The notes under the pieces: generated by a model
The model's input: only the letters and a program-made list of their open reading frames with translations
The model's database searches: none
What the model was told of the DNA's origin: nothing
Assembly: GCA_950097015.1 (NCBI GenBank)
Contig: CATNEN010000035.1
Coordinates: 1,302,001-1,366,000 of the forward strand
Length of the DNA stretch: 64,000 bases
Reading direction: 5' to 3'
From: Macrostomum hystrix
Lineage: Eukaryota > Animalia > Platyhelminthes
Position numbers and translations under genes: made by a program
In this document: positions 22,198 to 59,953 of the stretch, in pieces
How the letters are laid out: each line of letters starts with the position of its first letter
How positions within the stretch are numbered: the first letter of the stretch is position 1

Positions 22198-23464
22198 GCC
22201 TAGCTGGAATCGTAGCAAGAGTTCCAACTGGAATCGCAGCTAGCTGGAATCGTAGCAAGAGTTCCAACTGGAATCGCAGCTAGCTGGAATCGTAGCAAGA
22301 GTTCCAACTGGAATCGCAGCTAGCTGGAATCGTAGCAAGAGTTCCAATTGGAATCGTAGCTAGCTAGAATCGTAGCTAGAGTTCCAACTGGAATCGCAGC
22401 TAGCTAGAATCGTAGCTAGAGTTCCAATTGGAATCGCAGCTAGCTGGAATCGTAGCAAGAGTTCCAACTGGAATCGCAGCTAGCTGGAATCGTAGCAAGA
22501 GCTCCAAGTGGAATCGCAGCTAGCTGGAATCGTAGCAAGAGTTTTAAGTTGAATCGCAGCTAGCTGGAATCGTAGCTAGAGTTCCAATTGGAATCGCAGC
22601 TAGTTGGAATCGTAGCAAGAGTTCCAAGGGGAATAGCAGCTAGCTGGAATCGTAGCAAGAGTACTAACTGGAATCGCAGCTAGCTGGAATCGTAGCAAGA
22701 GTACTAACTGGAATCGCAGCTAGCTGGAATCGTAGCAAGAGTTCCAAGGGGAATCGCAGCTATCTAGAATCGTAGCTAGAGTTCCAATTGGAATCGCAGC
22801 TAGCTGGAATCGTAGCAAGAGTTCCAACTGGAATCGCAGCTAGCTGGAATCGTAGCAAGAGTACTAACTGGAATCGCAGCTAGCTGGAATCGTAGCAAGA
22901 GTTCCAAGGGGAATCGCAGCTATCTAGAATCGTAGCTAGAGTTCCAATTGGAATCGCAGCTAGCTGGAATCGTAGCAAGAGTTCCAACTGGAATCGCAGC
23001 TAGCTGGAATCGTAGCAAGAGTTCCAATTGGAATCGCAGCTAGCTGGAATCGTAGCAAGAGTTCCAATTGGAATCGCAGCTAGCTGGAATCGTAGCAAGA
23101 GTTCCAATTGGAATCGTAGCTAGCTAGAATCGTAGCTAGAGTTCCAAGGGGAATCGCAGCTAGCTGGAATCATAGCTAGAGTTCCAACTGGAATCGCAGC
23201 TAGCTGGAATCGTAGCAAGAGTACTAACTGGAATCGCAGCTAGCTGGAATCGTAGCAAGAGTTCCAAGGGGAATCGCAGCTATCTAGAATCGTAGCTAGA
23301 GTTCCAATTGGAATCGCAGCTAGCTGGAATCGTAGCAAGAGTTCCAATTGGAATCGCAGCTAGCTGGAATCGTAGCAAGAGTTCCAATTGGAATCGTAGC
23401 TAGCTAGAATCGTAGCTAGAGTTCCAAGGGGAATCGCAGCTAGCTGGAATCATAGCTAGAGTCA
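22198..23464. repeat. 40-bp minisatellite AGCTAGCTGGAATCGTAGCAAGAGTTCCAACTGGAATCGC
   Basis: Direct periodicity. Confidence 0.95.
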
Positions 23465-27109: not shown

Positions 27110-28240
27110 CCCCGTAATCAATCCCATAGAATGAGATTTTCCGCATCTCATAATCAATGCCATCCAATGAGATTATCCCCATCTCGTAATCTATGCCATC
27201 AAATGAGATTTTCCGCATCTCATAATCAATGCCATCCAATGAGATTATCCCCATCGCGTAATCTATGCCATCCAATGAGATTATCCCCATCTCGTAATCT
27301 ATGCCATCCAATGAGATTATCCCCATCTCGTTATCAATGCCATACAATGAGATTATCCCCATCTCGTTATCAATGCCATCCAATGAGATTATCCCCATCT
27401 CGTAATCAATACCATCCAATGAGATTATCCCCATCTCGTAATCAATGCCATACAATGAGATTATCCCCATCTCGTAATCAATGCCATCCAATGAGATTAT
27501 CCCCATCTCGTTATCAATGCCATACAATGAGATTATCCCCATCTCGTTATCAATGCCATACAATGAGATTATCCCCATCTCGTAATCAATGCCATACAAT
27601 GAGATTATCCCCATCTCGTTATCAATGCCATACAATGAGATTATCCCCATCTCGTAATCAATGCCATCCAATGAGATTATCCCCATCTCGTTATCAATGC
27701 CATACAATGAGATTATCCCCATCTCGTTATCAATGCCATCCAATGAGATTATCCCCATCTCGTAATCAATGCCATACAATGAGATTATCCCCATCTCGTA
27801 ATCAATGCCATCCAATGAGATTATCCCCATCTCGTAATCAATGCCATCCAATGAGATTATCCCCATCTCGTTATCAATGCCATACAATGAGATTATCCCC
27901 ATCTCGTTATCAATGCCATACAATGAGATTATCCCCATCTCGTAATCAATGCCATACAATGAGATTATCCCCATCTCGTTATCAATGCCATCAAATGAGA
28001 TTATCCCCATCTCGTTATCAATGCCATCCAATGAGATTATCCCCATCTCGTTATCAATGCCATCCAGTGAGATTATCCCCATCTCGTTATCAATGCCATA
28101 CAATGAGATTATCCCCATCTCGTTATCAATGCCATCCAATGAGATTATCCCCATCTCGTAATCAATGCCATCCAATGAGATTATCCCCATCTCGTTATCA
28201 ATGCCATCCAATGAGATTATCCCCATCTCGTTATTAATCC
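27110..28240. repeat. 36-bp minisatellite ATCAATGCCATCCAATGAGATTATCCCCATCTCGTA
   Basis: Direct periodicity upstream of NOM1. Confidence 0.95.
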
Positions 28241-28344: not shown

Positions 28345-31300
28345 ATGCCGAAGTCAGGCAGTTCTAACAAATGGCGCAAGCGCCAACTACGCGAAGACAT
28401 CGCTCAGGACGACGCCGAGATCCGACGCTACTCTCGTCTGCTCAAGCTCAACAAGCGACGCAAGACTCAGTCGAGCCTGCCGAAAGTATTTCGCGACACC
28501 GGTTTGGACTATCTGCTAGACATTGTGGGCGATGATAGAGACGACGTTGATAAGACCGAGAGTGCCTGCGTAGCAGACGATTTGGACGAAGCTAAAGTGG
28601 CCGAAATAATCAAAGAATGTCCGGAGAGTGCAGCCTACTATAGCCAACTGCGGGCTAGCAGAGAGACCGAGTATTCTAAGAAACTGACGAAGAAGAAAGC
28701 AAAGAAAAGAAAACTTGGCTCAGAATCGGCTGAGAAGAAACAGTTTGAGCATGTCAAAGAGTCAATTGAAGAGGAAGAAATTATTCAAGAAGAAGAAGAT
28801 GCCGATAGTGGGAAAAATCAGGCAAAGGCAGCAAAGTGTGATATCTATGGCCGCGACGTCCCAATCGCTTCCGCTGTCCAATCAGCAGCGTCTCAGTTGG
28901 ACCACTCATCCACGGCCGAAGAAGAAGAGAAACTGCGCCGGAAGATGCGCGCCCTGGTGAACCGAGTCAGCGAGCGAGTCCTGGCCAGAATCTCCGCCGA
29001 CCTCGAGGCTGTGTACCTGGCTAGCCCGCGCGGCCCCGCCAACAGCGCCCTAGCCAGCCTGGTGCTCGATGTCGCTGCTAACTCCGGCGAGCCACTGTCC
29101 GACAGAATGCTGGTTGATCAGGCCTCTCTTGTAGCCATATTGTGCTCAAATATTAGCGGCTGCGAGCTGGGTGCTCACCTGGCCGAGGCTCTGGCACTGA
29201 GGCTTGGTACCGATGCTCAGGTGATGAGCTTGGGAGGATTAGCCATAGCTGAAAGCTTTTAGAATCCATGAATGCGGATCAATTTTGATTGGTCGAACAG
29301 GGTTATAGGTCGATTCTATTTTTAGGCACTTAGTTTGGTAATAATAATGATAATAATAATAATAATAATATCAACTATGCTGTCCATTCTGTCCATTTCG
29401 CAGACTCCTGAGAACACACGCACACAAATACCCATACGCAGGCATGCGCTCACCAATGTGCCTTGGAGGTTGGTCCTTAGGGCGTAAATTGCACGAAAAG
29501 CCCCCAAGCCTTCTCTCCGCTGCTGCGTCCAAAATAAAATATGGCCTCGCCGCGGAATCGAGCTCAAGGACTTTAGTGCGAGAGGCAAACTCTCCGGACA
29601 TGACCTTGGAGGTTTTAGCTTGGTGCTATATTTAGAAAACAACTAGCATGTTTTGCCCCCCTTCGGGGAGCAGAAATATTTTTAATTCGTCTTGTATATA
29701 CTTTTTAGCAGCTGTATTTTCAGCTTTTTTAAGCTACACTGATCACCCAGTTGACAATGATCACCCAGTTGACAATGATCGCCCAGTTGACGATGATCCA
29801 CCATTGATGATGATCCCCAGTTGACAATGTTCCCCCAGTTGACCATGATCCTTTAGTTGACAATGATCCCCCAGTTAATGATGATCACCCAGATGACAAT
29901 CATCTCCCAGTTGACCATGATCCCCTATTTGATGATGATTCCCCAGTTGACAATTATCCGCAGTTGACAATGATCCTCCAGTTGACAATGATCCTCCAGT
30001 TGACAATGATCCCCTAGTTGACAATTATCCCCCAGTTTACCATGATCCCCCAGTTTACCGTGATCCCCTATTTGATGCTGACTCCCCAGTTGACAATGTT
30101 CCCCAGTTGAATTTTTATATTAGCTGCTTTTGTAGAAATTTGAAAAGAACAACATGGCTCAGGTTTAGCCATGATTTAAACTCTGGTTGGCTATGATTCA
30201 AGCTCTGGTTTAGCCATGAAGCTAAGAAATATGTTTTTAAAATGCTTTAAAAAAATTTTTTATCATTTGGAGGCTGGCTGAAAAAAAGGGAGGTAAAATT
30301 TTCATGTTACTTTTAGTAGGCTATTTAGGCAAATTAACAATCAAAACAAATATTTACACAAAATTTCTTAATTTGGGATTCGAACTTGCGACCTATGGTA
30401 ACCTCCAAGCCCCCACCGTCTGTTTCAGTCGCTGTCTCGCGGCCTAGACACAGGCGGTAAGACCAGTCACAACCTGCTGCTGTTTGCGATGTTCCTCTGC
30501 TGGCTTGGCGTCACCTCGGCCAAGCTGCCATTCGATCTGCTGCAGCTGCTGGCGGATCTGGCCACCGAGGAAGCGCTGGATGCCATTGTGCTGTGCTTGC
30601 GACACGCCGGTCTGCAGCTTCGGCGTCTGGACGGTGCCAGGATGCGCGCCCTGCTGGACGGACTGCAACGGCGGGCGGAGAATGACGGCCTGGCCGAACA
30701 GCTCGGCGGGGAGGCGTCGCGCGGCCGCTTCCTATTGGAGCTGCTGCAGGCTGTGAGAAACAATAATTATAGAAAAATCCCCGGCTACGACTGCGAGTAC
30801 GTGGAGCGGGCCAGGAAGGCCGTGCGACAGTTGGCCAGGTGCGCAGCTTTACTAGACAGGAGCTGGGGTGATGAACAGGTGTTGTGTTGATAGACAGCTG
30901 CTGGGGTGATAGATAGGTGTTGTGTTGAAAGACAGGTGCTGGGGTGATGGACAGGTGCTGGGGTGATAGACAGGTGTTTGGGTGATAGACAGGTGCTGGA
31001 GTAATGGACAGGTGTTAGGGTAATGGACAGTTGTTGGGTTGATGGACAGGTGTTGGGCTAATGGACAGTTGTTGGGGTAATAGGCAGGTGTTGGAGTAAT
31101 GGACAGGTGTTGGGATGCTGCTCGACAGGTAATAGACAGTTGTTAAGGTGCTGCTCGACAGGTGTTGGGGTAGTGGACAGTTGTTGGGGGTAATTGACAG
31201 GTGTTGGTGGTAATGGACAGGTGTTGTGGTATTGGAAAAGTTTTAGGGCACGTGTGTAAAGGACAGGAATGGGGGGTAATGGACAGATTTTCGATAATGG

Positions 31301-32529
31301 AGACTGGGGTGGGTGTATTAGCAGGTGTTGGGGTGGGTGTATTAGGCAGGTGTTGGGGTGGGTGTATTAGGCAGGTGTTGGGGTGGGTGTATTAGGCAGG
31401 TGTTGTGGTGTGTGTATTAGGCAGGTGTTGGGGTGGGTGTATTAGGCAGGTGTTGGGGTGGGTGTATTAGGCAGGTGTTGGGGTGGGTGTATTAGGCAGG
31501 TGTTGGGGTGGGTGTATTAGGCAGGTGTTGGGGTGGGTGTATTAGGAGTACGTTTGGGTGTACAGCACACGTGTACGTTGAGCTGGGTTGTTAGAAAGGA
31601 TAGTGTTGGTAGGCTTAGTTAAATTTTGTAGGAAGAAAACGTTATTAACTGATCCTCAAGTAACCTGGAATCCCTGATTCCACAGGTCGGAGGCCACGCC
31701 AGTGGAATTCGGTCTAGCTGACGTTCGCGACGCCCCAATCAAAGGCCGCTGGTGGGTGGTGGGTGCCGCTTACACTTCGCAGGCCACTGACTTGCCAGCT
31801 CCTGTCGCAGACTCCGCCACCGCCGCTGAGGCCGCCGCCGTTACGGCAGGCGCTGCCTTCGCCGGCTCCGGCGCCTCCATCAGTCAGCAGCAGCTCGACC
31901 ATCTGGCTTCGCGTCTCGGCTTGAAGACTCCCCAGCGACGCGCAATCTTCTCCTCGCTAGTTGGCGCCGCCGATGCCGACGACGCCGCCGCTCGGCTGCT
32001 CCGCCTGGCGTCCTCGGCCGCCGGCTCGGCCGCCGTGGCTGACGTGGCCAGCATAGCGCTGAAGTGTGCGCTGCGTGAATCGGCCAGCTACAATCCCTTC
32101 TACGCAGCCGTCCTGCTGCGCCTTCGTCGAGCCAATCGGAGCTTCGCCATGCCGCTTCGGTGTGCCGTCTGGGACCAGCTGGCAGCGCTGGGCGACATGC
32201 GCCACGACAGGGCGGCCCGCCTAGGCGACCTGGCAGCCGACCTCATGCTGGCCGGCGCCATCCCGCCCGCTGCCGTCATGTCCCGCTTCCCCTTCGAGCT
32301 GGTGCCCTCGACCGGCTCCGCTGCCGCCGTCTGTCTGGCCGCATTCGCCGGCGCTTTGAAGCGTCGGGCTGGCGACTCGCCGGAGCTTCCTGGCCTGCTG
32401 AGCGGCCTGGCTGGCGACGCCGGGGTGGCTCGCTGCCTGCCGGCCGGCCTTGTGGTCGCCGGTCGTCAGCTCGACAATTCGGCCGATGCCGACTGGCTGC
32501 TGCATCGCCTGCGCTCGTTGACCAGCTGA
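28345..32529 (+). CDS. NOM1: Nucleolar MIF4G-domain protein 1 (NOM1/Sgd1), exons 28345-29220, 30429-30838, 31686-32529, 709 aa
   Basis: Basic/acidic N-terminus with GLDYLL, MIF4G (ALVNRVSE...), RFLLELLQAVRNNNYRKIPGYD, KGRWWVVGA and an MA3-like region with YNPFYA. Phases 0 and 2 are consistent. Confidence 0.9.
29338..29606 (-). mobile_element. tRNA-derived SINE-like element, copy 2 (NOM1 intron 1)
   Basis: Reverse complement reads tttgcctctcgcac...gagctcgattccgcggcgaggcca...gtgcaatttacgccctaaggaccaacctccaaggcaca, followed by a (TTA)n tail. Confidence 0.6.
29745..30112. repeat. ~20-bp degenerate minisatellite GTTGACAATGATCCCCCA
   Basis: Recurrent unit, NOM1 intron 1. Confidence 0.85.
30860..31550. 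repeat. G-rich arrays (GACAGGTGTTGGGGTAATG-like, then 24-bp GGGTGGGTGTATTAGGCAGGTGTT-like)
   Basis: Direct periodicity, NOM1 intron 2. Confidence 0.85.
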
Positions 32530-32814: not shown

Positions 32815-34740
32815 GGATGCAGGATTTGAGATTGTTGATCAACGACTCGAAATTCTTGATAAATGATTCAGGATAGTTGATACTGGATTCAGGATAGTTG
32901 ATACTAGATTCGGGATTGTTGATACTGGATTCAGGATTGTTGATACTTGATTCAGGATTACTGATACTTGATTCAGGATAGTTGATACTGGATTCAGGAT
33001 TCTTGATACTGGATTCAGGATTCTTGATACTGGATTCGGGATTATTGATACTGGTTTCGGGATTATTGATACTGGTTTCGGGATAGTTGATACTGGATTC
33101 GGGATTCTTGATACTGGATTCGGGATTCTTGGTACTGGATTCGGGATTGTTGATACTGGATTCAGGATTGTTGATATTGGATTCGGGATTTTTTATACTC
33201 GATTCAGGATTGCTGATACTGGATTCGGGATTATTGATACTGGATTCGGGATAGTTAATACTGGATTCAGGATAGTTGATACTGGATTCGGGATTCTTGA
33301 TACTGGATTCGGGATTCTTGATACTGGATTCGGGATAGTTTATACTAGATTCGGGATTGTTAATACTGCATTCGGGATTCTTGATACTTAATTCGGGATT
33401 TTTTATACTGGATTCAGGATAGTTGATACTGGATTCAGGGTAGTTGATACTGGTTACGGGCATGCTTCAACAGTCGAATCCTACCCATTCTTGATACTGG
33501 ATTCGGGATTCTTGGTACTGGATTCGGGATTCTTGGTACTGGATTCGGGATTGTTGATACTGGATTCAGGATTGTTGATACTGGATTCGGGATTATTGAT
33601 ACTGGATTCGGGATTTTTTATACTCGATTCGGAATTGCTGATACTGGATTCGGGATTATTGATACTGGATTCGGGATAGTTAATACTGGATTCAGGATAG
33701 TTGATACTGGATTCGGGATTGTTGATACTGGATTCGGGATAGTTTATACTAGATTCGGGATTGTTAATACTGGATTCGGGATTCTTGATACTGGATTCGG
33801 GATTGTTGATACTGGATTCAGGATTGTTGATACTGGATTCGGGATTATTGATACTAGATTCGGGATTTTTTATACTCGATTCAGAATTGCTGATACTGGA
33901 TTCGGGATTTTTTATACTCGATTCGGAATTGCTGATACAGGATTCGGGATTCTTGATACTGGATTCGGGATAGTTAATACTGGATTCAGGATAGTTGATA
34001 CTGGATTCGGGATTGTTGATACTGGATTCGGGATAGTTTATACTAGATTCGGGATTGTTAATACTGGATTCGGGATTCTTGATACTGGATTCGGGATTGT
34101 TGATACTGGATTCAGGATTGTTGATACTGGATTCGGGATTATTGATACTGGATTCGGGATTTTTTATACTCGATTCAGAATTGCTGATACTGGATTCGGG
34201 ATTCTTGATACTGAATTCGGGATTATTGATACTGGATTCGGGATTTTTTATACTGGATTCATGATTGTTGATACTGGATTCGGGATTCTTGATACTGGAT
34301 TCGGGAAAGCTGATACTGGATTCGGGATAGTTGATACTGGATTCAGGATAGTTGATACTGGATTCCGGATAGTTAATAGTGGATTCAGGATTGTTAGTAC
34401 AGGATTCAGGATAGTTGATGCAGGATTCAGGATAGTTGATACTAGATTCGGGATTCTTGATACTGGATTCGGGATAGTTGATACTGGATTCGGCATTGTT
34501 GATATTGGATTCAGGATAGTTGATACTGGATTCAGGATTGTTGATACTGGATTCGGCATTGTTGATATTGGATTCAGGATAGTTGATACTGGATTCAGGA
34601 TAGTTGATATTGGATTCAGGATAGCTCATACAGGATTCGGGATTCTTGATACTGGATTCGGGATAGTTGATACTGGATTCAGGATAGTTGATACTGGATT
34701 CAGGATAGTTAATACTGGATTCAGGATAGTTGATACTGCT
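32815..34740. repeat. 21-bp minisatellite GATACTGGATTCGGGATTGTT between NOM1 and MCM9
   Basis: Direct periodicity; interrupted at 33454-33487 by a copy of the unique sequence that follows the array. Confidence 0.95.
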
Positions 34741-34779
34741 TACGGGCATGCTTCAACAGTCGAATCCTACCCACCGCAG

Positions 34780-37700
34780 CAGCGTCAGCGGGAGCCAGAC
34801 GCAGCCGAGGTAGCTTCGGCAACCCTGGCCTTCCAGGCCTACCTGTGCAAGACTCACGCCGGTGAGCTGCGCGAAATTCTTCGCGACGTCGGCCCAACCG
34901 ACGCTCACAGATCAGTTAGGGTGCTCGGACACTCGTTGAACGACTCCTTGCCCGACCTTCTGGCCGCCCTCCTCACCTGCCCGGAGGGGATGCTTCCAGC
35001 GATGGACTCGGCCCTGTCGGCCGCCTGTCGTCAGCTGATGTCCGAGGCGGCCGACGAAGCCAAGGCCGGCTGGACTTTGAAATCCAATCTGCACGTCCGC
35101 CTGATCGACCTGCCCCGCATTCCCGAGTACTATCGATGCCGGACTCCAACGTCAGCGGATGTCGGTCGTTACATCTGCTTCGTCGGCACGGTTGTTCGGC
35201 GCACCGAGAACAAGCTGGTGGAGCATCACAGGCGCTTCGAGTGCACCAGGTGCCGCCTGCGCTTTCCCGTGGCCGCGGAGTTTGAGCGGCACTTTGTCAT
35301 CGAAGCGCCTAAGCGCTGCCCGGCTGACAACTGCGGCAGCCTCAGCGTGCGCCAGTGCGAGGAGACGCCCCGCTGCGCTAATTATCAGGAAATACGCGTC
35401 CAGGAACAGCCGCAGCGCCTGCCCGTGGGAGCCGTGCCGCGCAGCCTGCTGGTCAGTCCGACTGGGATTGGGATTTTCTAAATTCGATTTGGGATTGGCA
35501 TTTTCCTAATTCGATTTTGGATTAAGATTTTTCTTAACTCGATCTAGGATTAGGATATTCTAAATTGGATTTGGGATTGGGATTTTCTAAATTGGATTTG
35601 GGATTGGGATTTTCTAAATTGGATTTGGGATTGGGATTTTCTAAATTGGATTTGGGATTGGGATTTTCTAAATTGGATTTGGGATTGGGATTTTCTAAAT
35701 TGGATTTGGGATTGGGATTTTCTAAATTGGATTTGGGATTGGGATTTTCTAAATTCGATTTAGGATTCGGATTTTCTAAATTGGATTTGGTATTAGGATG
35801 TTTTAATTTGATTTAGTAGTTGGATTTTCTAAATTGGATTGGGATTGGGATTTTCTAAATTGGATTTAGGATTAGGATTTTCTAAATTGGATTTGGGATT
35901 AGGATTTTCTAAATTGGATTGGGATTGGGATTTTCTAAATTGGATTTAGGATTGGGATTTTCTAAATTGGATTTGGGATTGGGATTTTCTAAATTGGATC
36001 TAGCATTAGGATTTTCTAAATTGGATTGGGATTGGGATTTTCTAAATTGGATTTAGGATTAGGATTTTCTAACTTGGATTTGGGATTAGGAGTTTCTAAA
36101 TTAGATTGGTATTGGGATTTTCTAAATTGGATTTGGGATTAGGATATTTTAATTTGATTTAGTAGTTGGATTTTCTAAATTTGATTTATTAGTTGGATTT
36201 TCTAAATTGGATTGGGATTGGGATTTTCTAAATTGGATTTAGGATTAGGATTTTCTAAATTGGATTTGGGATTAGGAGTTTCTAAATTAGATTGGGATTG
36301 GGATTTTCTAAATTGGATTTAGGATTAGGAGTTTCTAAATTGGATTGGGATTGGGATTTTCTAAATTGGATTTAGGATTAGGAGTTTCTAAATTGGATTG
36401 GGATTGTGATTTTCTAAATTGGATTTAGGATTAGGATTTTCTAAATTGGATTTGGGATTAGGATTTTCTAAATTGGATTGGGATTGGGATTTTCTAGACT
36501 TTTCTATTTTTCAATGGTATTTTCTATTTTCAAGTAATCCTCGACCCAAGGTGTGTCTGGAGCATGACCTAGTCGACGCCTGTCAGCCTGGCGAAGACGT
36601 CCAGGTATTCGGCATCGTCATGCGCCGATGGCAGCCGCTGCTGCCAGGCCAGCCGGCCCAGTGCGATCTGGTCCTGCGCTGCTGCGCCCTGGAGGAGTCC
36701 CTGGGCTCAACGCGCACCTGCCCGATGGTCTCCGGGGAGCGCCGAGCCGAGTTCGACGCCTACTGGGCCGCGTCCGGTAATTTTATCTGCTCAGCTTTGC
36801 CTGAATTTCCACTTCTGCCTCTGCGAATCATATTCTTCTATCTCTGAATTATCCCCTATTATCCACGTGAATCATCGCGTAAAATCATTGAATTATCCCC
36901 TCTTATTATTGTGAATTATCTTTGAATTATCCCCTCAAATCTTTGAATTATCCCCTCAAATCTTTAAATTATCCCCTCAAATCTTTGAATTATCCCCTCA
37001 AATCTTTGAATTATCCCCTCAAATCTTTGAATTATCCCCTCAAATCTTTGAATTATCCCCTCAAATCTTTGAATTATCCCCTCTTATCTCTGTGACTCAT
37101 CCCTACCTTATCTTATGTGTAATTTATTTTCACTCTTTAGAGACTTATCCCCATCTCTCCAGGCAGGCGGCCCCTGCATGCTCGCGACCGCATCCTGGCG
37201 AGCATCTGTCCCCAGCTGTGCGGCCTCCGCCTGGCCAAACTGGCTGTCGCACTAATCCTGGCCGGCGGTGTGCAAAAATCCGGCGAAAGCGGGCATCGAA
37301 CTCGCGGCCAATCTCACCTGCTGCTAATTGGCGATCCGGGCACAGGTAAATCGCAATTCCTCCGCTTCGCCAGCCGATTAGCCGGCCGGTCGGTTCTCAC
37401 CACCGGAGTCGGCAGCAGCGCCGCCGGCCTCACAGCGGCTGCTGTTCGCGAAGGCGGCCAATGGGCCCTGGAGGCCGGAGCCCTGGTCCTAGCCGACGGC
37501 GGAGTCTGCTGCATCGACGAATTCAATTCCGTTGGCGAACGCGACCGAACCTGCATCCACGAGGCCATGGAGCAGCAGACACTGTCTGTGGCCAAGGCTG
37601 GCCTAGTCTGCAAGCTGAACACCCGCTGCTCCGTGCTGGCAGCCACCAACCCGCATGGCAAACTAGACTCTAGCCAGAGCCTCAGCGTCAATACCAACCT

Positions 37701-40700
37701 GGCCAGCCCGCTGCTCAGCAGATTCGACTTGGTGTTGGTGCTGCTGGACAGGGGCGATCCGGCATGGGACGCCGCCGTGTCCTCTCATGTGCTCACTGCT
37801 CTTATAGAACGGTGAGTCATTCTACATGCTTTGCTTCTATTAATACTCCTATTGGGGTGAGTGGCGGTCTGACGCGTTTGCCTCTTGCACCAATTCCGAG
37901 CAATGTCCCTAAGCTCGATTCTGCGGCGAGGCCACATTTGTTTGAGAGAAGGCTTGGTTGCTTGTCGTGCAATTTACGCCCTTGAGGGCCAACCTCCAAG
38001 GCTCAGTGAAAGTGTACACTAATAGACGATGAGAAAGGTCAGGCCAGACGTGCACACCTGTGTGAATATGTGCCTGGGTAAGGTATCTGTGTGCATGTGA
38101 GCTCAGGAGTCAGCGAAATGGGCAGAATTTCCCACTCGCTGGCTGTGGGTCTAGTGTCACTTAATAATAATAATAATTGCCTATTTTAAGGTATAAAGTA
38201 AAAAATTTTGTTTGTGTTATAGATATGAAAACAGATTCCATCATTTTAAGCATCGCGCTGTAAGGTCAGACTTGGTGGTACTGGTAGACCACAAAGCGAC
38301 ATTATATTTCTGTCTATACCAGACACTACCTGCTCTATTGTTTTTGAGTCTTTGTCATATATAAGATGTCAATCTATCTTTATCACTTGCTGCTCGGAGG
38401 CACCATCACACCAGCAGTGAGACGCTTCACAATGGCCAGGTAGCAGACGCGGTTGCATCGCTCAGACTCTTCACACAGGCACTCCGACGGCACCAGGCTT
38501 GGGTGGTTGACCTTGAACGCGGTCACCTCGCTCTGGATCCTCTCGTAGGTGAAGGAGTTGTCGGGACATCCGGTTCCCTCCAGGATGCAGGGTCCGTACA
38601 GCCTCTCAGCCTCCTTCATCTTCTCGCGCTGCTCGTCCTTCAAAACCAATAAAAAGTTTTGCCTACTCGATAAGTCAAGTGCATCTAACAAACGTGCGAT
38701 CCTGTGTGAAGGCTACTCACAGTCAGCTTGCTGCTGCTTCGCTTGCTGCTCGGAGGCGCAATCGCTCCAGCGTAAAACCGCTTCACAATGGCCAGGTAGC
38801 AGACGCGGTTGCATCGCTCAGACTCTTCACACAGGCACTCCGACGGCACCAGGCTTGGGTGGTTGACCTTGAACGCGGTCACCTCGCTCTGGATCCTCTC
38901 GTAGGTGAAGGAGTTGTCGGGACATCCGGTTCCCTCCAGGATGCAGGGTCCGTACAGCCTCTCAGCCTCCTTCATCTTTTCGCGCTGCTCGTCCTTCAAA
39001 CGGATTATCAACAAAGCTACGAGTCTAGTCCCCTGCTTATAAAAAGCATCTCAAAAACACACGGAAGATTTCTCACAGTCAGCTTGCTGCTGCTTCGCTT
39101 GTTGCTTGGAGGCACCATCACACCAGCAATGAGACGCTTCACAATGGCCAGGTAGCAGACGCGGTTGCATCGCTCGGACTCTCCGCAAAGACATTCGGAG
39201 GGCACAAGAGCCGGATTTTTGGCCTTGAACACGGTCACCTCGCTCTGGATCCTCTCGTAGGTGAAGGAGTTGTCGGGACATCCGGTTCCCTCCAGGACGC
39301 AGGGTCCGTACAGCCTCTCAGCCTCCTTCATCTTCTCGCGCTGCTCGTCCTGTTAGTTTTCACACGTGAAGAATCCGAATGAGATTACGAATTTACACTC
39401 CTGAATGGAGATGTTGGTGTGCAATAGTAGCTAAGCACTTACGGTTATGTCACAGACCGCCAGCAACGGCAGCATGATAAGTACGAGTAGTATGGCGCGC
39501 ATCTTTGCCTCTGGATTAATCTGTTGGTCACTTTAGAAGAAGGGCGATGTCTCGAATGTGGCGAATTTTGTCAAGTTTGAAGATTCATATTTATAGAAAA
39601 GTTTGCTGTGGGTGTGCCTTTGGTCTATGAATTCTCTTAGGCTGAGTTTGTTCAGCCGGTTTTGCTTATTTGAGCAAATCGTCTAATTGACTTCCTACAG
39701 AAATAGGTTTAGTTTGAACAAACTCATGATATAAATTTCAGTTTTGAGTTTTTTGTTCGCTTTATTCGCTGCAGTGAACTGTGAATCTTGTCCTAATTTT
39801 TTCCTTTAAGTTTTTAAAGTCCTTTTGTTGATCTTGTGCTCAGATGGCAGTTAACTTGAAATTGTTTTTCGGGCACTGATTGAACAGCCGGATCAATGTC
39901 TGTTCTCATTCTAATGGGCTTTTGTTTGATTAAATATATCTGTAAGTCATTGTTTGTACAGATCAATACTTTTGTCTTCGCTCGCTTAGTCAGCCGCCTA
40001 TTCCACCGTGTGCAATTCATTTGCAAACTTTAAATGTCAAATTCTGAATTAACTATCTGAGCATATTTTGTTGTCTCGTATTTTTTTCTGTTTTTGATAC
40101 TGGAAAAAAATCTGAAGACACTAAATAATTGAATCTAAATCTGGAACCATTTCACACTGGAACCATTTCACACTGGAACCGTTTCACACTGGAACCATTT
40201 CACACTGGAACCATTTCACACTGGAACCATTTCACACTGGAACCGTTTCACACTGGAACCATTTCACACTGGAACCATTTCACACTGGAACCATTTCACA
40301 CTGGAACCGTTTCACACTGGAACCATTTCACACTGGAACCATTTGACACTGGAACCATTTCACACTGGAACCATTTCACACTGGAACCATTTCACACTGG
40401 AACCATTTCACACTGGAACCGTTTCACACTGGAACCATTTCACACTGGAACCATTTGACACTGGAACCATTTCACACTAAAACCGTTTCACACTGGAACC
40501 GTTTCACACTGGAACCATTTCACACTGGAACCGTTTCACACTGGAACCATTTGACACTGGAACCATTTGACACTGGAACCATTTCACACTGGAACCATTT
40601 GACACTGGAACCATTTGACACTGGAACCGTTTCACAATGGAACCATTTCACACTGGAACCATTCGACACTGGAACCATTTGACACTGGAACCATTTGACA

Positions 40701-43700
40701 CTGGAACCATTTGACACTGGAACCATTTGACACTGGGACCATTTGACACTGGGACCATTTGACACTGGAACCGTTTCACACTGGAACCATTTCACACTGG
40801 AACCATTCGACACTGGAACCATTTGACACTGGAACCATTTGACACTGGGACCATTTGACACTGGGACCATTTGACACTGGGACCATTTGACACTGGAACC
40901 GTTTCACACTGGAACCATTTCACACTGGAACCATTTGACACTGGGACCATTTGACACTGGAACCATTTCATACTGGAACCATTTGACACTGAGACCATTT
41001 GACACTGGAACCGTTTCACACTGGAACCATTTCACACTGGAACCGTTTCACACTGGAACCATTTCACACTGGAACCATTTCACACTGGAACCATTTGACA
41101 CTAGAACGATTTCACACTGGAACCATTTCACACTGGAACCGTTTCACACTGGAACCATTTCACACTGGAACCATTTCACACTGGAACCGTTTCACACTGG
41201 AACCATTTGACACTGGAACCATTTCACACTGGAACCATTTGACACTGGGACCATTTGACACTGGAACCGTTTCACACTGGAACCATTTCACACTGGAACC
41301 ATTCGACACTTGAACCATTTGACACTGGAACCATTTGACACTGGAACCATTTGACACTGGAACCATTTGACACTGGAACCATTTGACACTGGGACCATTT
41401 GACACTGGGACCATTTGACACTGGAACCGTTTCACACTGGAACCATTTCACACTGGAACCATTCGACACTGGAACCATTTGACACTGGAACCATTTGACA
41501 CTGGAACCATTTGACACTGGAACCATTTGACACTGGGACCATTTGACACTGGGACCATTTCACACTGGAACCATTTCACACTGGAACCATTTGACACTGG
41601 GACCATTTGACACTGGGACCATTTGACACTGGAACCGTTTCACACTGGAACCATTTCACACTGGAACCATTCGACACTGGAACCATTTGACACTGGAACC
41701 ATTTGACACTGGAACCATTTGACACTGGGACCATTTGACACTGGAACCATTTGACACTGGAACCATTTGACACTGGAACCATTTCACACTGGAACCGTTT
41801 CACACTGGAACCATTTCACACTGGAACCGTTTCACACTGGAACCATTTCACACTGGAACCATTTCACACTGGAACCGTTGCACACTGGAACCATTTCACA
41901 CTGGAACCGTTTCACACTGGAACCATTTGACACTGGAACCATTTGACACTGGAACCATTTGACACTGGAACCATTTCACACTGGAACCGTTTCACACTGG
42001 AACCATTTCACACTGGAACCGTTTCACACTGGAACCATTTGACACTGGAACCATTTCACACTGGAACCATTTCACACTGGAACCATTTGACACTGGGACC
42101 ATTTGACACTGGAACCGTTTCACACTGGAACCATTTCACACTGGAACCATTCGACACTTGAACCATTTGACACTGGAACCATTTGACACTGGAACCATTT
42201 GACACTGGAACCATTTGACACTGGAACCATTTGACACTGGGACCATTTGACACTGGGACCATTTGACACTGGAACCGTTTCACACTGGAACCATTTCACA
42301 CTGGAACCATTTGACACTGGGACCATTTGACACTGGAACCATTTGACACTGGAACCATTTGACACTGGGACCATTTGACACTGGAACCATTTGACACTGG
42401 AACCATTTCACACTGGAACCGTTTCACACTGGAACCATTTCACACTGGAACCGTTTCACACTGGAACCATTTCACACTGGAACCATTTCACACTGGAACC
42501 GTTTCACACTGGAACCATTTCACACTGGAACCATTTCACACTGGAACCGTTTCACACTGGAACCATTTCACACTGGAACCGTTTCACACTGGAACCATTT
42601 CACACTGGAACCATTTCACACTGGAACCGTTGCACACTGGAACCATTTCACACTGGAACCGTTTCACACTGGAACCATTTGACACTGGAACCATTTGACA
42701 CTGGAACCATTTGACACAGTAAAAAACTGTATCCAGTTTAAAATTTGTAATCGATCTAAACCGATGGGCACTAAATGTATGCTTTTCTCTCCGCTTCCTC
42801 ACCGCAGTGATGATTCTGACTCCGACGATATCGATACTGACGTGAAAGAGAATCTACCCGCTGCGCAGCGAGATGGGACAGCAGGTGCACTAGATTCAGG
42901 CGAGAAACAGCAGCAGCAGCAGCAGCATTGGAGCCTGGAGCGGTTGCAAGCCTATTTCGCCTATATCCGCAGCTTCAATCCGAGCATCGGGCCGGAGGCT
43001 GGCGCAGTCCTCACCGCCTATTATCAGCGGCAGAGAGCGGCCACGGCGCCCGACCGGCTCGGCGCTGAGCGCGGCGTCGGCTCTCGAACCACCACTCGCC
43101 TGCTGGAGAGCTGTATCCGGCTGGCCGAAGCCCACGCTCGCCTGATGATGCGCTCGTCTGTCACTCTGCAGGACGCCCTAATGGCCGTCTCCGTTGTTGA
43201 GGCCTCGATGGTTGGCGCCGCCTTGATTGGCGGTAGCGGAGGCGGCGGCGGCGTCGGCGTTGGCCCTCTGGCTGGCTTTCCGGAGCAGCCGGACGCTGAT
43301 TTTGGTCGAGAGGCTCGCCAACTGTTGGCCGCACTGGGCTTGGATCATCTTACTTACACCGCCGATGGCGCTGCTCATCGCGATGGCATTGCTGAGCCGC
43401 CGCCGTCGACAGGACGGCCCATTCTCGCTCTGTCGCGTCACGAATTTCGGGGCGCTGCCGGCGGTAAATCCTTTCTGTCGACTTCCTCGACTACGCCTAA
43501 CCTGTCGATATCGGCGGCGAAACGTCGACGCATCGTAGCCGACGTAATCCACGACGACGACGGCGAAGCCGGAGGCGAGAGCACCCGCTGGGAGAACGCC
43601 AAATCGATGCTGGACGTCAATGACGCGACGAACATTTTCGCTGATTCAATTTCTTCAGCTTCGTTTGCTGTCTGTCAGTTCAATATTCAGACTGACTTGT

Positions 43701-44488
43701 TTCAGGACGCGCCCATTGTGGTGGGCCATGCCGCTTACGGTCCGACTGCTTCTGTTCCGACTGCTTTCATTCCGACTGCTTCCATTCCGACTGCTTCCGG
43801 TCTGACTGCTTCCGGTCCAGCAGCTTCCGTTCCGGCTGCTTCCGGTCCAGCAGCTTCCGTTCCGACTGCTTCCGTTCCAAGACAAGGTAGTTCGGCTGCT
43901 TCCAGTGAAACAACGTCCGCTGGCAACGTGAGCTCGCAGTTGCCAGTCTTCTCTATTGACGATTTTGAATTGCCGGGCATCAATGCAGACACCCCGATGC
44001 AGGCGGACATCAATAATGTGTCTGCAGCAGCAGCAGCAACAGCAGCAGCGGTTTCGGCAACGAAATCTAGCCGACTCTCCGGTGCTCCGATGCTGCCGCC
44101 GCCGAGTCAGCCAAGTCAAAGGTTTTCCTTTAAACGCTTGGCCGCTAGTTCAGCCAATACGGCTGCAGCCTCTGCTAAGGCTGTCAACGCGAACGTCGGC
44201 GTTGCTGGTCGCCTGGTTGCTGGAGAGACTCTGGCTAAATTGCGCGCTTTCGAATGCTCACAGGATCCGCGAAAGGCCTTCCCTGCTGAACACTCAACCG
44301 CTGCTGCTGGATCCGCTTCGTTGGTCGTCGACAAATCCGCCCCCGGGTCTGCTCCGCCCGTCGCCAGATCCGCCCCCGGATCCGCTCCGCCCGTCGACAA
44401 ATCCGCCCCCGGTTCCGCGCCTGAGACAAGCGTGGCCCAATTATTTAGCATCGACGAGCTCTTCAACGACTCAAATTTTGATGTTTAG
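34780..44488 (+). CDS. MCM9: DNA helicase MCM9, exons ~34780-35451, 36551-36776, 37163-37811, 42808-44488 (~1076 aa); start codon unresolved
   Basis: Zn-finger CTRC...[27 protein letters not shown], Walker [12 protein letters not shown], Walker B CCIDEFNS, arginine finger [27 protein letters not shown] and a long disordered tail. Exon phases are consistent. Confidence 0.92.
35463..36500. repeat. 27-bp minisatellite GGATTGGGATTTTCTAAATTGGATTTG
   Basis: Direct periodicity, MCM9 intron 1. Confidence 0.95.
36845..37085. repeat. 21-bp minisatellite TCCCCTCAAATCTTTGAATTA
   Basis: Direct periodicity, MCM9 intron 2. Confidence 0.9.
37853..38178 (+). mobile_element. tRNA-derived SINE-like element, copy 3 (MCM9 intron 3)
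   Basis: gcgtttgcctct...aagctcgattctgcggcgaggccaca...gtgcaatttacgcccttgagggccaacctccaaggc...gggtctagtgtcac, followed by a (TAA)n tail. Confidence 0.65.
38383..39502 (-). CDS. Nested antisense gene: secreted precursor with three tandem 6-Cys domains, exons 39502-39443, 39349-39077, 38993-38721, 38637-38383, 286 aa
   Basis: Exon 1 encodes the signal peptide [20 protein letters not shown] and ends at donor gtaagt. Three phase-0 exons (273, 273, 255 nt) have clean AG/GT sites and each carries C-x6-C-x28-C-x-C-x5-C-x3-C followed by KR. Introns are 93, 83 and 83 nt. Confidence 0.85.
39588..39596 (-). promoter_or_regulatory. TATA box candidate for the nested antisense gene
   Basis: CTATAAATA on the - strand about 90 nt upstream of the ATG at 39502. 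Confidence 0.5.
40140..42717. repeat. 16-bp minisatellite CACTGGAACCATTTSA, ~160 copies
   Basis: Direct periodicity, MCM9 intron 3. Confidence 0.95.
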
Positions 44489-45329
44489 CATTTTCGTGGC
44501 AAACATTTTCGCATTCTCGCGTTAGTGAACTTTAGTATTTTTTAGCAATAATTTTTGTTCAGACAAAATGCATAAGTTTTGATGGCAGGTAATTAATCTT
44601 TAATATCAATAAATACTCTTCTACTAAGGTTATTGTCTTCTTTGTACGTTTTGTAAAATTGCTTAGATTCGCTTTTTTTTAAAACAATATTTTTAATAAC
44701 TTCCAGTAGAAGTAGCAAAACCATAAGACGAAAAGTTTTCTAAGTGCCCCCTTTAGCAGAAAAGCAATGTCTATATTAGCAGAGTGTGCCCCCTATAGTA
44801 AAGAGACAATGTCTCCCTTCAACAGTCAAACAATGACCCCCTTTAGCAGAGAACTACCAAGCCATTTTGCCGCCCGTTTTTATTCCCCTGAATATTCCCC
44901 AGACTGATTGGTTGACAGACAGACTAGGCGATGGTTTCCTATGGTCCAGCAGCTCCGTCTATATAAAGGCAGGTGACCACCGAAGTCGGAGATGATCCAG
45001 GCACATCGGGTGACATGCTGATCAATTTAATTCAAGGCCTGGCAAGGCCGCACTGAGGCGCAGTGCTAATTCGTGTATAGGGGTGTATGAAATACACTAG
45101 CGCTTATGGGAAAAATCATAACTTCGGCCAGAACCATTGAATATCTCGACGGTCGGAAGAGCTGGCGACATGATTCTTGTTTCAGAAGATGCGCGACAAA
45201 AATTTGGCCCGTGTTCTTGAGTTTCGTGTGCTTGCGTTGCTCCTTTCAGGTGCAGCAAAAATTGTCAGGGGGGAAATGTTTTATAAAAATACTTGATTAA
45301 AGTTATGTATAAGCGAAAAAAAATTTCAG

Positions 45330-59953
<14,624 letters not shown>

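Follow-up and report, generated by a model that had tools for sequence, protein, structure and literature searches.

A nested gene for a repeated six-cysteine protein

The 64,000-nt window analyzed here, which is the stretch C35:1302001-1366000 of the 220-Mb, 42-contig genome assembly of the flatworm Macrostomum hystrix, carries a small minus-strand gene at 38383-39596, lying within an intron of the plus-strand gene MCM9 and encoding a putative signal peptide followed by three copies of a six-cysteine module. We regard it as practically certain that this is a genuine protein-coding gene, and as highly probable, judging by the sequence of its first exon, that the product is secreted. Its modules belong to a family that appears specific to Macrostomum and has so far gone undescribed. 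For the gene as a whole we tentatively favor the reading that it encodes a secreted precursor of several modules, to be cut by a proprotein convertase.

A reading made earlier from the sequence alone (hereafter the sequence-only reading) had placed antisense exons in this intron and joined them in phase 0 into an ORF of 286 amino acids, and reading and translating the minus strand reproduced these exons exactly (20+91+91+84 = 286 codons; Table 1). All introns are of the GT..AG type, and all junctions are in phase 0. As that reading had also remarked, the mechanical ORF list shows the gene as fragments only; the gene, though real, is probably overlooked by automatic annotation. At the DNA level the modules form a 356-bp unit present in 2.7 copies, with 87% matches over the repeat region (Tandem Repeats Finder), and the three module exons open with the same 17-residue start. 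In the terminal module the TGA stop codon occupies the place that is held in the internal modules by CGA, the Arg codon of a Lys-Arg pair (KR) in the linker, such that the last module ends in ...PPSSK. The window gave no Rfam matches.

The gene was further claimed to have a promoter region of its own, and a TATA-type box (TATAAATA) indeed stands upstream of the transcript, in a region that is conserved in a second copy of the gene described below; it is a putative promoter element. The true transcript start probably lies slightly upstream of position 39547, about 25-35 nt past this box, and the nested transcript extends from 38244 to approximately 39565.

Spliced transcripts from public sequencing runs

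Transcript contigs from public runs, which come from three coded organisms, were placed on positions 38200-39750. They contained the spliced joints 38636|39442, 38636|39076 and 38636|38720 (4 runs, 3 studies, one sediment metatranscriptome), which read CT..AC on the plus strand and hence GT..AG on the minus strand. Intron sequence in this interval was covered by no contig, and the outermost contig positions were 39547 (5’) and 38244 (3’). The exon 2 donor (39077|39076) was joined to the start of a module exon, and a contig of 303 nt from run X2 spanned the entire exon 3 and was joined across 38720|38636. The first 29 nt are identical in exons 2 and 4, with exon 3 off by one base, and the contigs enter the next exon by just 29-34 nt (one, from the second copy, by 114 nt); they therefore confirm each of the three donors, together with an acceptor sequence common to all, and leave the pairing of donors with acceptors ambiguous. 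Of the predicted junctions 39443/39349, 39077/38993 and 38721/38637, the donor sides are thus established, and the acceptor sides are supported as a shared sequence.

As all exons are in phase 0, skipping one of them would preserve the frame, and the sequence-only reading had suggested that forms with 1, 2 or 3 domains might arise in this way; the contigs do not decide for or against them. In one X1 contig the end of exon 2 continued into an exon start that has the spelling of exons 2 and 4 and differs from that of exon 3. The exon-3-specific 3’ part was covered by no X1 contig and at slight depth in one bin by X7, and exon 3 was covered fully by X2. Behind the X1 pattern there may be the skipping of an exon, an allele with two modules in other strains or species, or gaps in the contigs.

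A five-module twin and the conservation of module exons

The sequence-only reading had not mentioned that the gene has a twin with five modules. Contig C34 (3411000-3429499; loci L018 and L019) carries an inverted, collinear copy of window positions 36882-44716 at about 90-92% identity, in which the MCM9 exons, a minisatellite and the nested gene are all found. The nested gene of this copy consists of an exon 1 with two substitutions and then five intact module exons, again with GT..AG introns and phase-0 junctions; intron 3 of the window gene is identical to all four of its inter-module introns, and the 120 bp upstream of the ATG differ between the two copies at 3 positions. Both of the C34 substitutions (39484 C>T and 39497 G>T) recur in a metatranscriptome contig in which exon 1 is spliced to a module exon, showing that the C34 copy is transcribed and spliced as well. 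The duplicated MCM9 segment dates from an old segmental or whole-genome duplication, unless the two copies are very divergent haplotypes.

Comparing the A-type module (exon 2) with the B-type modules (exons 3 and 4) gave pS values of 0.26-0.28 and pN values of 0.066-0.071 (pN/pS approximately 0.25), so that synonymous change exceeds non-synonymous change about fourfold. Introns 2 and 3 match at only 32/83 positions, and the GC content at third codon positions of the exons is 0.78 versus an intron GC content of 0.40. The module exons are under purifying selection, and the introns between them have diverged. These observations bear on the most skeptical account of the locus, namely that it is a transcribed recent duplication, or a misassembled or collapsed repeat, that yields no protein. 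The repeats are young and very alike, and support for the gene stands at the level of DNA and transcript, both of which would suit such an account. However, all module exons of the two copies (8/8) keep their open frames, splice sites and six cysteines, synonymous change is in excess, divergence affects the introns but not the exons, and spliced transcripts occur in three independent studies. We consider this account very improbable.

A predicted three-helix module with no detectable structural relative

The cysteines of the module stand at positions 17, 24, 53, 55, 61 and 65, confirming the spacing C-x6-C-x28-C-x-C-x5-C-x3-C that had been read from the sequence. In an alignment of 12 modules from the same genome (alignment A1), C17, C24, C53, R63 and C65 are invariant. 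AlphaFold2, given the 12-sequence family alignment, modeled the module with a mean pLDDT of 84.6 and a pTM of 0.74 as helices at residues 2-20, 31-44 and 59-74, followed by a disordered tail at 83-91 that corresponds to the ...NKRSSSKLT linker. The same three-helix pattern was predicted for each module of a two-module protein from Macrostomum lignano. Differences between A- and B-type modules are concentrated in the loop between helices 2 and 3, and the module core has a pI of 5.1-5.4, making it slightly acidic. The relatives P0001 and P0021, and their orthologue in the window's own genome (the L014 gene), have lost Cys4 and Cys5 together in the second module; this joint loss points to a Cys4-Cys5 disulfide, a pairing that is very probable, on modest evidence that probably represents one evolutionary event. 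The remaining bonds are predicted to be Cys1-Cys6 and Cys2-Cys3.

The claim that the domain is an unrecognized one held in every search that we made. Pfam gave nothing meaningful for the three modules and nine M. lignano relatives at E-values up to 10, a sequence-profile search of the PDB returned only a chance match (E 0.24), and Foldseek against the PDB found no credible fold match (best E 2.8). A VIA-align comparison with 48,161 chains peaked at a Z score of 5.0 (pieces of Cas13d, CARD domains), which is within the noise for helical models, and in the ESM Atlas all TM scores of the shape search were below 0.5 and the feature search gave no usable match. The module is thus modeled as a three-helix unit without a detectable structural relative; because small helical bundles are hard to place, these empty searches do not prove a new fold.

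Several known families share parts of this architecture. Prosaposin and other saposin-like proteins are secreted precursors whose tandem helical six-cysteine modules, of about 80 residues, are freed by proteolysis. In saposins, however, the cysteines follow a C-x2-C pattern near the start and a C-x5-C pattern near the end, in contrast to the spacing found here, and there was no match to the Pfam models SapB_1 or SapB_2 up to E 10; the sequence-only reading had likewise ruled out a saposin. The fold also differs, with three helices modeled as opposed to four to five, and no saposin occurred among the Foldseek and VIA-align matches, although little weight attaches to such an absence. Nematode polyprotein antigens/allergens (NPA, e.g., ABA-1), like other tandem-repeat polyprotein precursors, also combine a signal peptide with tandem, near-identical small helical units, from which cutting at basic sites frees one soluble protein in many copies; unlike the window modules, NPA units are of about 130 residues, cysteine-poor and cut at tetrabasic sites, and the resemblance is one of general layout, with no sequence or fold relation to the window module found.

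Other candidates were also rejected. WAP domains and Frizzled cysteine-rich domains have eight and ten cysteines, respectively, versus six in the module, which matched neither in Pfam. For the helical six-cysteine hormones of the CHH/ITP type, there was no match to the Pfam crustacean CHH/MIH/GIH model and none among the fold matches. A transposon-encoded protein, which like a known domain would have spoken against a new family, was looked for and not found: near-identical copies of the repeat unit are confined to the two collinear MCM9 segments, which argues against a transposon origin, and Pfam gave no match.

A probably secreted family apparently restricted to Macrostomum

An HMMER profile of the family, built from the 12-module alignment and searched against 1.84 billion representative proteins, retrieved nine matches, all from M. 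lignano, at E-values from 5e-37 to 8e-4, with eight of them below 1e-10. They are named 'hypothetical' or 'uncharacterized' and are 108-193 aa long, apart from some chimeric gene models; they include PAA82461/A0A1I8GAE8, PAA50938, PAA46481, PAA52638, PAA48680, PAA73435, PAA61428 and PAA75885. The automatic names that UniProt gives to relatives ('Saposin B-type', 'WAP' or 'FZ' domain-containing) are mutually inconsistent and lack Pfam backing. The M. lignano relatives share the six-cysteine motif PC[IV]..G..CP...P.EC.C...ERCNR.CYY and, when complete at the N-terminus, a hydrophobic signal-like start. They differ from the window gene in having one or two modules, an inter-module linker free of KR, and at most 37% identity to the window module. 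In three M. lignano gene models (P0005, P0011 and P0015) a family module is fused to unrelated proteins (tubulin-tyrosine ligase-like, RNase H); these fusions are probably gene-model chimeras in a compact genome.

In the window's own genome, a search with a single module found its two neighbors, the five modules on C34 and weaker matches at nine other places. The profile, which scores the window modules at about 1e-25, extended this to at least 32 modules at at least 18 loci, with many adjacent pairs and mostly one- or two-module genes; the window modules also carry the conserved Cys1, Cys2, Cys3 and Cys6 and the Arg before Cys6 that mark members of the family. The loci include C35:1537587-1538173 (L014/L015) and C38:31191247-31194691 (L009/L010), with others on C2, C25, C5, C31, C7, C8 and C1, and some of them are tandem gene pairs. 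Orthologues from this genome and from M. lignano share about 85% identity. With matches confined to M. lignano among 1.84 billion proteins and at least 32 modules in the window's own genome, the earlier proposal of a lineage-specific family is upheld, and the sequence evidence points to a Macrostomum family that is so far undescribed. Further searches agreed with this scope: a word-indexed search of 5.8 billion proteins with a single module gave zero candidates, the same collection searched with the family alignment (106-338 aa) gave only three M. lignano proteins, none of which matched the spliced product, and six M. lignano locus tags, searched for in full texts, led to no paper.

A two-module gene at C35:1.5376 Mb, the orthologue in this genome of the two-module M. 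lignano type, shows how such genes may have grown. It consists of a signal-peptide exon followed by one phase-0 exon per module, with exon boundaries that are homologous to those of the window gene and lie just before a [DN]x[DEQ]R[EQ] motif. Giving each module its own phase-0 exon is therefore a family-wide trait, which the sequence-only reading had not noted, and the three- and five-module genes represent expansions of this plan by exon duplication. The family thus illustrates a way in which secreted proteins grow, tandem duplication of single phase-0 exons producing three modules in one copy and five in the other.

The result adds a flatworm-specific, probably secreted family for which there is no Pfam model, solved relative or literature. 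Sexual conflict, adhesion and regeneration are studied in Macrostomum as a model, and its gland products are usually sought among the abundant unannotated secreted proteins; having a defined family and a confident structural model therefore gives in situ hybridization, RNAi and proteomics a practical starting point. Lineage-specific secreted cysteine-rich families are common, and the finding has no bearing on any long-standing open question.

A candidate precursor cut between modules

Exon 1 encodes a typical signal peptide, as had been proposed, resembling those of P0001 and of the L014 gene, and all family members listed with an N-terminus have a hydrophobic, signal-like segment there. Small residues at positions -3 and -1 suggest that the signal peptide is cleaved after ...AVC. 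A KR pair is found in all internal linkers of both copies (6/6; two in the window, four on C34), within the segment modeled as disordered, and the gene thus has the layout of a precursor in which a signal peptide is followed by repeated units separated by dibasic sites. In the model that we tentatively favor, the gene's own TATA-type promoter would drive its transcription and a 17-residue signal peptide would take the product into the secretory pathway, where each exon-encoded module would fold independently into a small three-helix bundle with three disulfides. A proprotein convertase would then cut at KR in the disordered, Ser-rich linkers and a carboxypeptidase would trim the ends. Given the KR of the internal linkers and the change of CGA to TGA in the terminal module, the trimmed modules would all share one C-terminus. 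A single transcript would consequently supply one protein several times over, in near-identical copies that are soluble, slightly acidic and about 80 residues long, with a yield that scales with exon number (three modules in the window copy, five in the duplicate). The mature module would probably act as an extracellular, non-enzymatic binding or signaling factor released from a secretory cell.

The cleavage step is a plausible part of this model, for which the arguments on the two sides are nearly balanced and lean slightly against. Several points weigh against it or against the model at large. The two-module relatives lack a KR in the linker, so that cleavage is not general to the family; O-glycosylation could shield the Ser/Pro-rich linker; and the KR that immediately follows the last cysteine sits in modeled helix 3 and is probably no cleavage site. 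In addition, the contigs speak to strand only through the orientation of splice sites, with tissue and expression level beyond their reach, and searches of the literature on Macrostomum glands, cysteine-rich proteins and neuropeptides returned nothing that could be attached to the module family. The case for secretion, disulfide pairing, cleavage and an extracellular role is itself drawn from sequence and structural model, and so is that for the terms 'polyprotein' and 'effector' of the sequence-only reading.

Some of the same points would fit a protein that stays uncut, a secreted, multivalent chain of beads on a string that contributes to mucus, eggshell, adhesive or another matrix and whose valency or length is set by the number of exons. 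The two-module relatives with KR-free linkers suggest that tandem modules can work unprocessed, Ser/Pro-rich disordered linkers resemble glycosylated spacers, and module number differs between the copies. This account, which we see as possible but somewhat unlikely, leaves unexplained why KR is kept in every internal linker, why the stop codon of the last module falls exactly at the KR site, and why the modules are near-identical, like those of multi-copy precursors.

Were the released product a hormone or neuropeptide, either the module or the short peptides between KR sites would be liberated from neurons or endocrine-like cells. The combination of a signal peptide with KR sites is compatible with this, and some single-module relatives (the L009 and L010 genes and P0006) end in GKR, GRR or GKK, resembling amidation and cleavage signals and hinting at processing of the prohormone type elsewhere in the family. 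The MCM9-nested gene, however, has no Gly-dibasic amidation signal, conservation within the repeat is lowest in the peptide between the KR sites, and the first KR falls within modeled helix 3. Typical flatworm neuropeptide precursors are unlike large families of folded modules, and the modules here are folded units of 70-80 residues encoded at at least 18 loci; the M. lignano relatives, moreover, are named in none of the papers covered by the full-text search. Taken together, we rate such a role as quite unlikely.

A role in reproduction or defense was considered as well, the product being a prostate or seminal-fluid protein or an antimicrobial factor that evolves rapidly under sexual or host-microbe conflict. 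Many prostate-limited transcripts of M. lignano code for unannotated secreted proteins (PMC5977470). The lineage-restricted distribution of the family, with M. lignano proteins no more than 37% identical to the window module, the change of copy number between duplicates and the clustering of module-type differences in the helix 2-helix 3 loop also agree with such a role. On the other side, the acidic core is unlike that of cationic membrane-active peptides, which leads us to down-weight the antimicrobial version, and a pN/pS of about 0.25 indicates constraint rather than diversifying selection. Nor did the family motif turn up in the accessible supplementary files of the M. lignano prostate in situ screen. 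We consider this role unlikely.

A bolder version of the precursor model can also be formulated, in which the whole family would be a macrostomid-specific set of secreted signaling or partner-manipulating proteins, pheromone-, hormone- or seminal-fluid-like in nature and built on an undescribed disulfide-rich three-helix fold. The MCM9-nested gene would in this case be a true polyprotein gene whose output is set by the gain and loss of phase-0 exons (3 versus 5) and perhaps by exon skipping. This remains speculative, and we would not expect it to hold in full.

The host gene and its surroundings

The host had been named as MCM9, and this identification was borne out: in a phmmer search against the PDB, the exon at 37270-37811 matched MCM9 at 1.4e-75 and the other MCM proteins (MCM2-7, archaeal MCM) at 1.9e-53 or weaker. 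The donor after 37811 and the next exon at 42808 place the nested gene inside a 4,996-nt intron, with the whole nested transcript within this single plus-strand intron, and the nesting is kept in both copies of the duplicated segment. Nested intronic genes are common in animal genomes, and nesting does not imply a functional link to the host gene. The present case resembles them in being a small gene on the opposite strand, with its own putative promoter, in an intron of a larger housekeeping gene; its placement inside MCM9 is probably incidental.

Table 1. Features of the nested gene and of its host gene MCM9 (window coordinates)
Feature	Position	Strand	Basis
TATA-type box TATAAATA	39588..39595	-	Read from the sequence, upstream of the transcript; putative promoter element
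5’ UTR, as far as contigs extend	39503..39547	-	X1, X2 and X5 contigs ending at 39545-39547
Exon 1, coding part; 20-codon signal peptide, ATG at 39502	39443..39502	-	Translation; donor 39443|39442 in contigs of 4 runs
Intron 1, 93 nt, GT..AG, GTAAGT donor	39350..39442	-	Free of contigs
Exon 2, module 1, A-type, 91 codons, phase 0	39077..39349	-	Translation; X1, X7 and X5 contigs
Intron 2, 83 nt, GT..AG	38994..39076	-	Sequence
Exon 3, module 2, B-type, 91 codons, phase 0	38721..38993	-	Translation; X2 contig
Intron 3, 83 nt, GT..AG	38638..38720	-	Sequence
Exon 4, coding part, module 3, 84 codons and TGA at 38385-38383	38383..38637	-	Translation
3’ UTR	38244..38382	-	X7 contig on 38244-38416
MCM9 exon, AAA+ core with Walker A, Walker B and arginine finger	~37270..37811	+	ORF; PDB match; GTGAGT donor after 37811
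MCM9 intron holding the nested gene, 4,996 nt	37812..42807	+	Donor and acceptor read; frame joins GAA CG|T GAT
Next MCM9 exon, C-terminal part	42808..44488	+	ORF and acceptor; assigned by position and joined frame

The same MCM9 intron holds a 16-bp minisatellite at 40141-42717. The window as a whole is rich in long minisatellite arrays, with periods of 10-46 bp and 15-160 copies, each array having its own unit (e.g., 407-2160, 22200-23462, 27113-28238, 32865-34738, 35463-36496, 40141-42717 and 50885-53181). Those of the MCM9 region (approximately 32865-42717) occupy non-coding DNA, either between coding exons or upstream of them, and the arrays generate long spurious ORFs on both strands. Upstream of MCM9, long exon-like plus-strand open frames within 28345-32529 (28345-29262, 30489-30890 and 31702-32529) may belong to another gene, whose product would be acid-rich and then Ala/Leu-rich.

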